Shown piece by piece: positions 4,966 through 47,094 of a stretch of 64,000 bases of DNA. The position numbers and the translations under genes are program-made. Source of the DNA: Blastocystis sp. Blastoise (Eukaryota; Protista; Bigyra: Opalinata); assembly GCA_039096225.1 (NCBI GenBank), contig JBBPEB010000015.1:372001-436000 (forward strand). Direction: 5' to 3'. Each line of letters begins with the position of its first letter. The stretch's first letter is position 1. The notes beneath the pieces are model-generated. The model was not told where the DNA came from. It was given only the letters and a program-made list of their open reading frames with translations, and made no database searches.

Positions 4966-7337
4966 TTAATTCAATTTATAAAGTCTGTCAATAGCATCTT
5001 TACCTTTAAATGAACGGAAATAGGGCTATATATATTATATTATTATTTATAAATATTACATTAAATATATTAATAACTTTAATAGTATAATAAATAATAT
5101 ATAAATATAATATGAATATAAAAATGGATAACATACATGTTGTAGAGCTCGAAGAGGAGTATATTCGACTTCTCGTTCTGTTTGAAGCAATAAATGAAGT
5201 AGATGAAGACGAGATACGTCACGTAATAATGCTTTATTCCCATATATATTCAACGACTCGAGACGCTTCTATAGAAATAATTATATATAGAATATATAAA
5301 GCATATATATAAAGTATAGAATATAAAATATTTAAAAAAAGTTTTAAAAAGTTGAACAGATAATTATATATATATATATATATATATGTACAGAGAATAT
5401 TTTATCCATGCATTTTCTGGCACTTCTATCACTAGTTTCATAAACACACATTTCGCGGTATATAAGCCGCCTACATTCAAGATTAAGATCCTCATCCGTC
5501 TATAGAAATAATAATAATTACTATTATTATATATATATAGAATATAATATTTAAACATCATTCTATAGAAATAGTAGTTAGTATATATATATATATAACT
5601 ATATATATATATACAATTAAACGATTATTCTTCTTAATCATAATTATTTGTCGTGGTGAACAGGAATAAAGATCTCGATGACCTAACATCATCTAAAGAA
5701 AATTAATAATATATATATATATATATATATATATATATATATATACTTCCATCATTAAAACACCTACACTCCACATATCATATTGATATATAATAATAAT
5801 AATAATAATAATAATAATAATAATAATAATAATAATAATAATAATAATATATACATAAGTATATTCATAATCTTTTCCATGTTCAATAACTCCTGGAGGT
5901 GCGTAAACCGCGGTTATCTCGTCATTTGATGGAGCTTTATAAGGATATAAATAAGGAGTTGAATTTGTATATAAAGCACTACCCCAATCAATCTATATAT
6001 AAATATATAATTTATGTTAATACAAATAAGTGATTAAGAATAATAATAATAATAATAAGAATAAGAATAATAATAATAATAAATAATATATACCAAAGTG
6101 ATTTTGAATATATCTTTATCTTTAGATATACATATATTTTCTGGTTTAATATCTCTATGAATAACCTTATGATTCTGTATATAATTTAATATATGAAATA
6201 ATTGGTAAAAGATCGACTTGAAAATAAAATCAGACTCCTGTAAAGCATACCAAAAAGATGAGGGTTGTATAATTCCATTACTATTCTTATAAATAGAATT
6301 ATAAAGTGATTCTCCCTCATATTTGTATATTAACCACGGGATATAGAGAAGATGATCTGGTCTTAATGTACTATAATATATATAGTTATAAAGTATGATA
6401 TATATATAGATATACTGATAATTAATATTAATGCCAACTTGTTCGATATAACATTGTTGTAGTCTATATATAAAATATATAACATATATAACATATATAA
6501 TATATACCTTGTTATTCCTGGATAATTTAAATATAATCCAAAGAACAATTCTCGTCGAGCAGTAATTAACTTATCTATACCTTTTTCCTATATATTAATA
6601 TACATATACATAAACTTTTATAAACAGAATACAAAATTATTATAAATAATAAAAACATGAAAATGAAATAATATATAAATATAGTATATATATACAACAG
6701 AGATTCTCTTAAGAACATAATAGTCTTTATCTTCATTATTTGTTGATTGACCTAACCAGACATGACCAAATTTCCCTCCTGCAAAAGCATCTTCAGAAAT
6801 ATTGAAAATATTTGTTGATATATCACAATGATTACGTAAATCTTCTATTATTTCATCTATATATATAATTATTATTATACATATATATAATATAAATATG
6901 AATAATTAAGGTAATTATTGAAAAACATACCGAAGGCATCATTATCATATCGAACAAACACAAGATCGCAATTATGAGTTCTCTATAGAAATAAATAAAT
7001 ATAATTCATAAATTCATAGATTATATACATTTGCTCCTACTACAATAGCTTGAGACCCTCTTAAATTTGAAGGAGATTCATCTTCCAGCTCATCTTCATC
7101 ATCATGAAGATTATTAGCAGAACCTGTAGACAAAGATAATGCTAATGAATCATCATCAATCTTTCGAATTAATCTGTATCTATCTTCACTTCCAATAGAT
7201 ACTCCCCTTAGATCTGAGGAAAGAGGACGAATTAAAATTTCTTGACTAGATTGAAGTGCAACTTCCTTTGAATCTTCAGCTGAACAGAAAAGAATGAGTT
7301 GAAGAATCAAAAACAACCAAAGGAATGTCTTCTTCAT
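4966..7337 (-). CDS. Protein kinase with N-terminal signal peptide (about 11 exons)
   Basis: Spliced translation: MKKTFLWLFLILQLILFCSA..., FAGGKFGHVW, YVLKR, RRE, HRDIKPEN, IDWGSA, YAPPG, DMWSVG, ALQHPYF. Confidence 0.85.
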
Positions 7338-7550
7338 CCTTGATAGAATCCATTCATGTATAAAACACATTCTTTTAAACAAAGAATAAATAAAAAAAGA
7401 AGAATCTACACAGTCCCACAGATCTTCTCTCTATACACAGTTATTTTTCGATATTTTCATTCAGAGTTGGACTGGCTTCTACACGCCGTTATTTACCCAA
7501 TAAGAATCCCACCATTTTTCTATAAACAAGAGAATCTATCAATTCTAACT

Positions 7551-7561
7551 AGATCACCCTA
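7551..7561 (+). promoter_or_regulatory. AGATCACCCTA motif upstream of RPS12
   Basis: Identical 11-mer at a similar distance upstream of RPL27. Confidence 0.55.
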
Positions 7562-7790
7562 AATTCCCACGAAAATATTTTTCAATGTTTTTTTGACGCT
7601 AAAGAATTTGGTTCGACCAATACTATTGGCTAAAAAGCTGTTTACCAATAGAATACTATAAAAAAAGAAAAACCAATAAACAATAGAGAAATATATAATT
7701 ATCATGGAAACAATCACTAAACAGAATTTTTATATTTTTTGCCATAAAAAGTTATATTTATATAATACTCTCTAAGGACACCATAATAAA

Positions 7791-43912: not shown

Positions 43913-44032
43913 TTGTCATAAATGTATATTTCTTATTCTTGATAGATTTCATGAACTTTCTTCATTTTATAAATATAAACCATCTAAACAAAACACATAT
44001 AAAAGAAATATTATCCAATTTTATTTGTTCGA

Positions 44033-45465
44033 TCACTTTTAAATTCAAATTTGTTTTCTTTTAAAGCAGAAAATAAACTATATATAAGTAGTAATCTTAT
44101 TACTATATCACATACCTTTCACATTGCGAAACGGACAACTGAAAAGATTTTACATTCTATATATGATACTTTATAATTATGGATAGTATCATACTACTAG
44201 ATTCATAGAATTTAAAATTGAAATTAAGCATTGGGGATCTCCTTTTATATACTCTTGATTCCAACTATATTTATGAGTTAAATTGGATTTCACATTACGA
44301 TTCTTTCTTAAAAAAAGAATTCTCAAGAAATCATTGAATTCCAATAGGAAATTATATAGTTTTTGTTTTTTATCTTCTATATTATAATACTCAATAATGG
44401 TTATATATATAACTATATATCATAAACATACTATTCCCCAAGAATTGTGTGTCCCATCGAATAGGTTCCAATTTTAAGACTGATGAAGTTACCTATATAT
44501 ATACATAATTAATAATTATTACACATAAAATACTCATTATATATATATATATATAAACAACTATTATTACACATAAAATACTCATTATACATACATGAAG
44601 ACTTTAAACAGATAAATAGATAATATATAAACTACTAATTATTACACATAAAATACTCATTATATATATATGAAGACTATAAACAGATAAATACTATATA
44701 TATACTTCTGGAGGAGGCATAAATGCAGAAGGAGGGACATCAAAGAGAAGTTGAGGTTTATATAGATATTGTGTTAATATACTTAATCGTCGATATATAG
44801 AATCATTCTCCCTATATATATATATTATTCAAAGTAAAACTATAATATGTAGAATAAACTATATTTCTAAATACAAATAAGCTTAAGGATTATATATTCA
44901 ACTATTATTAACATACGAAGCACAAATCTTCTGAGCAAATTCCTTTTGAACAAGAAGTGTATTTCCTTTCAAGAACCAAAAAGATGGATCTAATATGAAC
45001 TTGTATAATAATGAAGAAGAAATATAATAAGGAATATTAGACACACAACATGTAGGAGAGTACTCACATTTCCAATCTAATATATCTGCATTAATAACAT
45101 GAAGTGAACCAGATTCCAAGTATTTAGAAAAACGATTCCCTAATGGTGTTATCATTTGCTTGTCTTTCTCAATACATATCTAAATTATTTTATATTTGAT
45201 TAAAATACTTTATTCATTAGATAATCATATATACAACTGATTTAGAAGTTGATAATAGAATAGACGTCAAATTACCAGTTCCTGGTCCTATTTCTAGTAC
45301 TACATCATTTTTCGTTATGTCACATGAATCATGGATTTTATGAAGAACCGATTTATCAATTAAAAGATGCTGACCATAACTCTTCTTCAGATGTACATAA
45401 CGTCTGAATGTAGTTATTGGAGAAAATAGTCCTGTATTATTATAATTCACAAATGCTTTAAACAT
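44033..45465 (-). CDS. rRNA adenine dimethyltransferase KsgA/Dim1 family, probably organellar (7 exons)
   Basis: YGQHLL, VLEIGPGTGNLT, IEKD, SNIPYYISS, VQKEFA, FMPPPEVTS; N-terminus resembles a mitochondrial presequence. Confidence 0.88.
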
Positions 45466-45856
45466 AATATTTGCTTCTAGATATAACGATAGTAGTTAAA
45501 CATTAGGTTATATATTAGCCAATAACGAAATACTAAAAACTAGATACTTTTGAAATGAATGGTCTAGCTATATTATAATTAAAACTATTATAAATCCCTT
45601 GTTTGTGTAAGATATGGTAATACCAATGTAAAAAATATTGTAATTATACAATATATAATTATTAATTATTAAATAAATAAAAAAAATAAATTCTTGAACA
45701 TAAAAATCAAATGTCTATGTAAGAAACACTCTATTGATCATTAAAAAAATTTATAAAATTGTTTTTTGTATTTTGACATAAAACAACAATATATATAAAG
45801 CACACAAAACGATATAAATAAAAATAAAAATAACCACACAATTACATGCATTTCTT

Positions 45857-47094
45857 TTATATATTATTGGGCTCAATAGGAGTTTCTGAAATTTGCTTAT
45901 CAACAATCTCATCATTATGATCTACAGTGTCTTTATTTGAATCACTTTTGCCAGTTAACTTTTTCTTCATGCTACGACGAGTTTTCTTTTTGGCTTCAAC
46001 AGGTTTTTTTGGTTCATCTTGCTTTTTCGATTTGACTGAAAGTGGATTAGGTCCTTTAGGTCCTTTTTTCTTCTTTGGTTTTTCTTCGTATCTTGGTTAA
46101 GAAATTGTTTTTAATAATGACAATATTTATAGAATAAAATAATATATAAAAGAATGTAATAAAAGAAAAAACATAATGTATTGTAAAAAGATATTTCTTG
46201 TTTTGGTTCCTCTTCTTTATCTAAACCAAGAGCTTTTCTTTCAATAGGAGATATCGACATTCGTTGATCAAATTTCTATATAAAATAATCGAGATATACA
46301 CAAATTTTTTAAACTACTACAAGAATAACATAATTTATAATTGAAAAAAGTTATTATAAATAAACATGTAATACTTAATATATATATATATATATATATA
46401 TATATAATACATGTTTGCAGTAACTCTTTGAACTATCGGAAACACTTTCCAATACTAATACGCTACGGTTAAATAAGATAACAGGTACTCCTGGAATAGT
46501 ATGAAGAATGTCTCTTAGTGCAGAAAATTCAGATGCAAATACAAACTTGGTTTTCTTTGGTTGATGCATATCTATATAATTATGTATAGAAACAATTATA
46601 AATAAGAACAAAAGAATAGAAATAAATAATGAAATAAAAAAATAAAAAATTATATTATTAATTGATATAAGGTAACTAAATACGATGTGCAATATCACAG
46701 AAACATTTTAAAGATGATAAATGATCTTCATGACCACATTCAACTTGAGCCAAGCCACATGCAAATTCATAAGCTCTTTCTGCTTTCTTCCCTTTCTGTT
46801 TCAAACGTTCAACAACACATGGAGTCACACAAACATTGGCACTAGGGTCCTATATATTTAGAGAATATAGGAAAAATTCTGATACAATAAAAAATAGTTA
46901 AGCTAATATGAATAAATTATATATACACATATAAAATTAGGTAATAGACGATCAACAGCAGTTGGTAAGTTCAATTCAATAGCTTTCATAATGAAAGATT
47001 CATCTAATAATATATTATATGGAGACTCAAAATGAAAATTAATTTCATAGAATTGCAATATTTTTCTGATCTTTTTGTTTCTAGTGATTCTCAT
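45857..47094 (-). CDS. UTP23: rRNA-processing protein UTP23 (PIN domain)
   Basis: MRITRNKK, NFHFESPYNILLD, VTPCVV, IPGVPVI, KKKGPKGPNPLSVK. Confidence 0.9.
46088..46194 (-). other. U12-type AT-AC intron in UTP23
   Basis: 5' ATATCTTT, branch TTTCTTAAC 8 nt before the end, 3' TAC; joins EPKQE|EEKPKKKKGP in frame. Confidence 0.9.

Follow-up and report, generated by a model that had tools for sequence, protein, structure and literature searches.

The 64,000-nt stretch analysed here (G000:C4:372001-436000; hereafter the window), from the genome of Blastocystis sp. 'Blastoise', contains introns whose ends are neither GT-AG, GC-AG nor U12-type, two of them in a class I fumarate hydratase (fumarase) gene and one in a gene of the TatD DNase family, with further candidates in a DEAH helicase and a divergent kinase. 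No register of these five introns, or of six introns in the ribosomal-protein genes RPL15 and RPL17 elsewhere in the same genome, is GT-AG or GC-AG. The one regular feature of the odd introns, consistent throughout the set, is that their borders briefly duplicate sequence from the far-side exon. The interpretation favoured here, which we hold with about as much belief as doubt, is that these are real introns removed by a tolerant major spliceosome, their ends having been overwritten from spliced transcripts. A first-pass annotation of the window had named the five introns, and the bases it gave were found in place for all five; those in fumarase and TatD were upheld by the deposited protein P0001 and by spacing in homologues, whereas those in the helicase and kinase are plausible but unproven. 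Its broader proposal, that terminal bases other than G are tolerated, held up in that introns lacking GT-AG, GC-AG or U12-type ends need exact removal for conserved proteins to be encoded.

The deposited fumarase of Blastocystis sp. Blastoise (P0001, 558 aa) is 100% identical to the largest exon of the window gene, and exact protein-to-DNA mapping showed that it can be read from the window only by removing introns 3 and 5 together with three GT-AG introns (Table 1). Both odd joints, one between APEGLT and LMSQ and the other between RGVY and NAYT, are spanned collinearly by homologues from animals, bacteria and Blastocystis. A single fumarase locus was found in the 33.3-Mb genome, ruling out a second copy as the source of the mRNA. 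Intron 3 has only three equivalent registers (AC-AT, CG-TA and GT-AC), none of them canonical. Intron 5 has nine, from 24386-24495 to 24394-24503 (TG-TC through TG-CA), of which none is GT-AG or GC-AG and one is AT-AC; the earlier description of this intron as AT-AC without U12 consensus was thus right about the missing U12 donor and branch motifs, while the dinucleotides it gave represent one choice among nine. No AG occurs inside intron 5, by which nested or recursive splicing was ruled out. At the level of the predicted gene, both introns are confirmed as obligatory and non-canonical.

The same two positions are occupied by ordinary introns in human-derived subtypes. BT1 (subtype 4) and JDR (subtype 1) have a 30-nt GT-AG intron at the same codon and phase as fumarase intron 3, and BT1 has a GT-AG intron at a register falling inside the range of intron 5. 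Placed at the BT1 register, intron 5 opens with the same five bases as the exon that follows it, and its last three bases are those that close the preceding exon. Since the odd fumarase introns lie at GT-AG sites of BT1 and JDR, they are best regarded as old introns with rewritten ends rather than as insertions, their positions pre-dating the split between the tortoise and human-subtype lineages. The odd introns also show no terminal inverted repeats and no mutual similarity; insertion of a transposon or introner with target-site duplication was ruled out by the ancestral positions and the lack of such inverted repeats.

Gene calling in the source genome combined BRAKER3, StringTie and Mikado, and junctions had to be supported by RNA-seq (PMC12129017). 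A predictor restricted to canonical sites would not be expected to emit GT-AC or non-U12 AT-AC introns; as the deposited fumarase model contains both, and the pipeline required RNA-seq junctions, the model is probably transcript-derived and so probably provides indirect RNA support. RNA sequencing runs that contain the fumarase region do exist. A metagenome scan for the 3' joint of fumarase intron 3, with the last base left as N, gave no matches. The last 403 codons of the gene contain no introns, and in BT1 and JDR codons ~221-454 are interrupted by introns; such a 5'-biased layout is the pattern expected of cDNA-mediated intron loss.

The exon preceding the TatD intron corresponds to positions 86-136 of the TatD_DNase profile. 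Splicing at the GT-AA joint would place 22 residues between the HxR and HSF motifs, and a rival in-frame GT-AG joint (near 42874) would place 18. Among 209 homologues, this spacing has its mode at 22 (83 proteins), followed by 23 (65 proteins), with a range of 19-48, and is 18 in none. The GT-AA joint is therefore favoured, and the GT-AA intron is supported as a prediction from homologue spacing. When the 52-aa TatD exon was used in a representative protein search, only relatives of at most 75% identity were returned; a search with the Corallochytrium homologue P0121, from which the spacing statistic was derived, found no Blastocystis protein, and Pfam gave no useful match to the short exon. 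About 44 weak matches to the TatD intron occur elsewhere in the genome (69-79% identity over 90-230 nt); they are A/T-rich, none reaches the ends of the intron, and they probably represent not a mobile element but a low-complexity repeat rich in T. The U12 donor consensus ATATCCTT occurs inside coding exons of TatD (42863-42870, forward strand, the match beginning at the first base of the exon) and of the kinase (5941-5948, reverse strand), which is attributable to chance, the window containing 11 matches against 10.7 expected.

Direct repeats were present at all five odd joints of the window, measuring 2 nt (fumarase intron 3), 8 nt (fumarase intron 5), 9 nt (helicase), 6 nt (TatD) and 3 nt (kinase); over all odd introns they range from 2 to 10 nt and match the far-side exon at its boundary. 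Random pairs of window positions reached a repeat of at least 6 nt in 1.05% of trials, giving p ~1e-5 for at least three of five window joints with repeats of that length, and the junction repeat never exceeded 4 nt in 30 stringently chosen GT-AG introns. Where a joint carries a repeat, the ends assigned to the intron are one of up to 11 equivalent registers.

The canonical introns of this genome start with GTATAT or GTATGT and end in (TA)nG. Three of the odd window introns look canonical but for their last base (...TATAC, ...TTATAA and ...TATAT), and in these the last base and the preceding A match the end of the upstream exon. More generally, six odd introns with a GTATG donor finish in the same dinucleotide as the exon before them (AC, AA, AT, CG, AA, AC), an identity expected by chance at ~0.10 each and ~1e-6 jointly, the RPL15 and RPL17 members carrying an ascertainment bias. 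A GTATGT-like donor, of the kind able to pair with U1 and U6, is found in fumarase intron 3, TatD, the kinase, RPL15 intron 1, RPL15 intron 3 (C33) and the RPL17-A intron of C29, and is absent from fumarase intron 5, the helicase intron in its AT register and the RPL17 introns in C32.

RPL15 is represented by two paralogues (loci G000:C2:26700-27800 and C33:1213500-1214500) sharing the same first intron, which has a GTATGT donor and whose end, ...AATATCG, duplicates the last 7 nt of the upstream exon. On solved eL15 chains, alignment assigns residues 1-31 to exon 1 and residues 32-57 to exon 2; as the exons abut between residues 31 and 32, removal of this intron must be exact, and the register starting with GT ends with CG. 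The rule suggested in the first-pass annotation, RT...AN with T at +2 and A at -2 fixed, which leaves the junction repeat aside, is broken by this intron at the A and is thus not general. For RPL15 intron 3, one paralogue can be read as TA-AG or GT-AA; the intron of the second paralogue starts with five bases that equal the next exon, so that 10 nt match the spliced joint, and it is at this intron start that the differences between the otherwise near-identical paralogues are clustered.

In RPL17 (loci C29:1060000-1061200 and C32:539000-540300), the ends of the intron between GRIGP and YLSHP differ between the paralogues, one having GT-AC and the second CT-AC, and both copies (C29 and C32) keep ...TATAC despite diverged intron interiors. 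The last intron of the C32 copy is bounded by CTGAAC, AT-AC being one possible register. A GC-rich relative (Logan contig) has GT-AG at both RPL17 positions. Because odd ends are common to the RPL15 paralogues and to the RPL17 paralogues, and occur in the single-locus fumarase, they are stable and lie in essential genes. In the RPL17 protein as deposited (P0388, 162 aa), nearby GT-AG pairs that cut into the exons have been chosen: it reads GRIGPIHPAH in place of the conserved GRIGPYLSHPAH, loses YLS and skips 23 C-terminal residues. It was probably mis-modelled on account of the odd introns and, since it sidesteps them, deposited models are not uniform evidence. The first RPL17 intron (L013 and L014), which is canonical GT-AG, repeats in its final 6 nt those that close the upstream exon; the paralogues differ there at a synonymous exon base (TAT/TAC) and the intron base at -3 differs in step (TAG/CAG), which hints that exon end and intron end were copied together. 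Two RPL3 genes (Table 1), with intron-free coding sequences of ~1150 nt, are 99.8% identical, and no similarity was detected between their flanks, a pattern that suggests retro-copying or cDNA-mediated conversion.

The putative helicase intron sits in the non-conserved tail following the OB fold and, by direct reading, only its AT-AG and GT-AT registers connect the OB-fold exon to the last exon, which is rich in Lys and looks coding. In the kinase, the stretch keeps the frame and contains no stop, and could therefore be retained in the transcript; Pfam gave no useful match to this piece of the kinase. For these two genes it is possible, if doubtful, that the models are wrong and that nearby GT-AG sites are used or the stretch is kept, an explanation that does not apply to fumarase, TatD or RPL15. 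Beside some odd introns the deposited RPL17 does reveal in-frame canonical alternatives, and in the helicase GT(22839) could be paired with AG(22896); that pair, however, would rely on GTTTTT, a poor donor, and its frameshift soon meets a stop and strands the Lys-rich reading frame. Retention in the kinase would insert an implausible 23 residues of poly-Ile into the C-lobe, and both candidates obey the same copy rule as the verified introns.

Table 1. Introns and genes considered in this study; unless a locus is named, coordinates are those of the window.
Feature	Position	Strand	Ends and remarks
Class I fumarate hydratase gene	23346..25714	+	6 exons; 5 introns, all within the first 155 codons; P0001 maps exactly
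Fumarase intron 1	23355..23396	+	GT-AG; canonical control
Fumarase intron 2	23430..23482	+	GT-AG; canonical control
Fumarase intron 3	23641..23995	+	GT-AC; consensus-like GTATGC start, ...TATATAC end; upstream exon also ends in AC
Fumarase intron 4	24171..24302	+	GT-AG; canonical control between both odd introns
Fumarase intron 5	24393..24502	+	Non-consensus at both ends; 8-nt repeat (7 nt upstream of the joint and 1 downstream)
TatD-family DNase intron	42601..42862	+	GT-AA; starts GTATGA, ends ...CTTATAA; upstream exon ends TTATAA (6-nt repeat)
Putative last intron, DEAH helicase (DHX40-like)	22835..22896	+	AT-AG, or GT-AT four bases on; 9-nt repeat AGATATGTT over both joints
Putative 69-nt (ATT)n intron, divergent kinase	5786..5854	-	GT-AT; upstream exon ends TAT; between the APP and DMWSVG motifs
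U12-type AT-AC intron (contrast)	15148..15220	+	Donor ATATCCTTT; branch site TCCTTAAT ~6 nt before the terminal AC
RPL17 regions affected in P0388	L014 1872-2060 and 2114-2291 (G000:C32)		
RPL3 gene L027	G000:C3:1632298-1633389		
RPL3 gene L028	G000:C2:230369-231451		

Small nuclear RNAs (snRNAs) with canonical recognition boxes were found for U1 (5' end AUACUUACCU), U2 (GUAGUA), U5 (loop GCCUUUUAC), U6 (ACAGAGA/AGC), U11 (canonical 5' end), U12 (GUAAGGAAA) and U6atac (AGAGAAGG). Of the three minor snRNAs searched for, U11 scored 62.9 bits and U6atac 63.8 bits, while U12 scored 46.8 bits, full length but below the cut-off. Compensating changes in the snRNAs, which the first-pass annotation had envisaged, were ruled out by these canonical boxes. 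Restoration of the ends by pre-mRNA editing, also raised there, is not needed, and nothing points to it.

On the favoured interpretation, the odd introns would be genuine, heritable descendants of ordinary U2-type GT-AG introns in which one or both terminal stretches have been overwritten with a short copy (1-10 nt) of the far-side exon, and removal would still occur exactly at the ancestral joint. From the ancestral GT-AG positions and the retained donors, we infer that the major spliceosome removes them, most of them still presenting it with the usual GTATG donor and a 3' tract rich in A/T. As regards the choice of 3' site, a terminal G (or AG) would, in this lineage, not be strictly needed for exon ligation. 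The copies themselves would be a mutational footprint, left by repair or gene conversion that took spliced transcripts or cDNA as template and halted a few bases beyond the exon-exon joint. Signs of cDNA-mediated recombination in the lineage include the confinement of fumarase introns to the 5' third of the gene, the intronless identity of the RPL3 genes and the clustered differences between the RPL15 paralogues.

Several considerations weigh against this interpretation. That the joints are actually spliced, and that the genomic bases are as given, rests on homology and one deposited model, and the assembly is of the R9 nanopore type with MiSeq polishing. The RPL15 and RPL17 examples were chosen from leads that already mentioned repeats and are subject to ascertainment bias. 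As the deposited RPL17 model relies on nearby GT-AG pairs, certain canonical alternatives could be the ones spliced in vivo. Canonical snRNAs leave unexplained how the 3' joint after ...AATATCG and before T, or either end of fumarase intron 5, would be found. Simple tolerance, moreover, predicts random point changes unlike the exon, of which there were none among the odd introns.

On a further reading, rather unlikely in our estimation, the place of exon ligation in tortoise Blastocystis would be set by something other than terminal dinucleotides: the machinery might recognise the far-side copy of the upstream exon end or of the downstream exon start, or follow a purely positional rule. A fixed distance between branch site and 3' end, as in the 30-nt introns of human subtypes, was rejected, direct reading revealing no consistent A at -8.

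Excision might alternatively be guided by the junction repeat instead of by conventional splicing, either in the euglenid manner or through joining akin to template switching or recombination, at the RNA or DNA level; this we regard as unlikely. It accords with fumarase intron 5, RPL15 introns 1 and 3 and the last RPL17 intron of C32, in which the repeat alone marks the joint. Fumarase intron 3, the kinase intron and the RPL17 intron of C29, however, share only 2-3 nt with the far exon, too few to guide excision, and their GTATG donor is still normal; the sites themselves go back to GT-AG introns. Between the two ends of the odd introns, duplex energies of -3.8 to -9.6 kcal/mol were obtained, while 30 canonical introns averaged -8.4 kcal/mol, and fumarase intron 5 with its flanks yielded no significant fold (z = +0.54); excision guided by a hairpin or a bulge-helix-bulge-like structure was ruled out by this lack of end pairing and of a significant fold. 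Non-canonical 'junctions' bounded by direct repeats are also produced by template-switching artefacts of reverse transcriptase and by microhomology-mediated intron loss. Here, by contrast, the intervening sequence is genomic and breaks the conserved frames of single-copy or essential genes, so that its removal is a biological necessity and not a library artefact.

Known systems resemble the odd introns in part. Like them, the nonconventional introns of euglenids and the noncanonical introns of diplonemids have variable non-GT-AG borders, joint repeats and an ambiguous border, and occur alongside canonical introns (PMC12621601, PMC4770533). Those introns, however, are defined by end-joining base pairing, with U1 pairing presumed absent in many of them, whereas the Blastoise introns lack such pairing, mostly keep a U1-compatible GTATG donor and lie at positions that are GT-AG in sister lineages. 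In Amoebophrya, noncanonical introns and introner elements likewise show a wide range of terminal dinucleotides and have direct repeats of 3-5 nt overlapping their boundaries, which lends the repeat-guided explanation some support (PMC7789003). The Amoebophrya introns also have inverted repeats of 8-20 nt, form families and look transposon-derived, with U1 and the minor spliceosome apparently missing (PMC7789003), in contrast to the absence of inverted repeats and families, the old positions and the complete canonical snRNA set found here. The closer relatives, Blastocystis subtypes 1 and 7, share with Blastoise both spliceosomes and a small non-GT-AG fraction (PMC5608401). Intron classes published for human-subtype Blastocystis are GT-AG, GC-AG, GA-AG and U12 AT-AC (PMC5608401; PMC10639083); those of subtypes 1 and 7 keep a 3' AG or U12 motifs, and GT-AC, GT-AA, GT-AT, GT-CG or repeat-bounded introns were not described (PMC5608401).

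The odd ends could also be non-functional sequence, either errors of assembly or polishing or a damaged allele shown in the consensus of a diploid genome while a second allele, canonical or without the intron, supplies the mRNA, an explanation as improbable in our judgement as guidance by the repeat. Blastoise is the tortoise-gut isolate Rus-B of Lind et al. (2025; PMC12129017); its window has ~24% G+C, and tortoise isolates have a G+C of 21-23% and longer introns (PMC12129017). For the source assembly (33.3 Mb in 34 contigs; Illumina reads of DNA and poly(A) RNA under PRJNA1084774), Flye --meta was run on R9 nanopore data, and MiSeq DNA reads then served for polishing with racon, Polypolish and POLCA (PMC12129017; preprint PMC10690189). 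DNA and RNA libraries were run on the same instrument, and a diploid k-mer signal was present in all isolates (PMC12129017, PMC10690189). Spliced or intron-less reads left unclipped in polishing would overwrite just the intron bases adjacent to a junction with those of the far exon, and one extra G would make intron 3 of the C33 RPL15 canonical. Yet the DNA was RNase-treated and the libraries were PCR-free (PMC12129017), no damage is seen in the exons of these genes, a far larger target for errors or allelic decay, and the same odd ends recur at separate paralogous loci (RPL15 in C2 and C33, RPL17 in C29 and C32). By our estimate, a vote for such a change could come only from reads ending a few bases from the joint, and genomic reads would far outnumber these in moderately expressed genes, fumarase, TatD and the kinase among them; G-to-C is, besides, not a typical consensus error.

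Removal of the odd introns by the minor (U12) spliceosome through a tolerance of varied terminal dinucleotides, as considered in the first-pass annotation, is very improbable and already largely refuted. In its favour, U11, U12 and U6atac genes with canonical boxes are present, hundreds of U12 introns, mostly AT-AC, occur in human-subtype Blastocystis (PMC5608401, PMC10639083), and AT-AC is among the registers of fumarase intron 5 and of the last RPL17 intron of C32, but in a pattern scan of the window the RTATCCTT donor started none of the odd introns and the TCCTTRAY branch site was absent from their 3' parts, both motifs being present in the U12 control intron at 15148 (the only one of those scanned with this branch site), and, in addition, most odd introns have a major-type GTATG donor and the orthologous introns of BT1 and JDR are U2-type GT-AG. 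That control was the one true U12 AT-AC intron found where two had been reported. Its branch-to-3' distance is unusually short.

Splice-site dinucleotides are not discussed in the paper describing the tortoise-isolate genomes (PMC12129017); the pattern of odd ends copying the far exon is not described there and differs from the euglenid and Amoebophrya precedents. In practical terms, gene finders limited to canonical sites mis-model such genes, of which the deposited RPL17 is an example. Should exon ligation be positioned by something other than terminal dinucleotides, any dinucleotide, CG included, could end introns in essential genes, and splice sites would then be marked in a manner new for a eukaryote with a complete canonical snRNA set. 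If the assembly is right, a protist with conventional snRNAs routinely removes introns ending in AC, AA, AT and CG from single-copy metabolic genes and from ribosomal-protein genes, which would challenge the indispensability of the terminal G-G contact in the second step of splicing and make these introns natural substrates for studying 3' splice site choice. The far-exon footprint would then be direct evidence of spliced transcripts writing back into genes where introns begin and end, a step that has been proposed for intron loss but is seldom observed.

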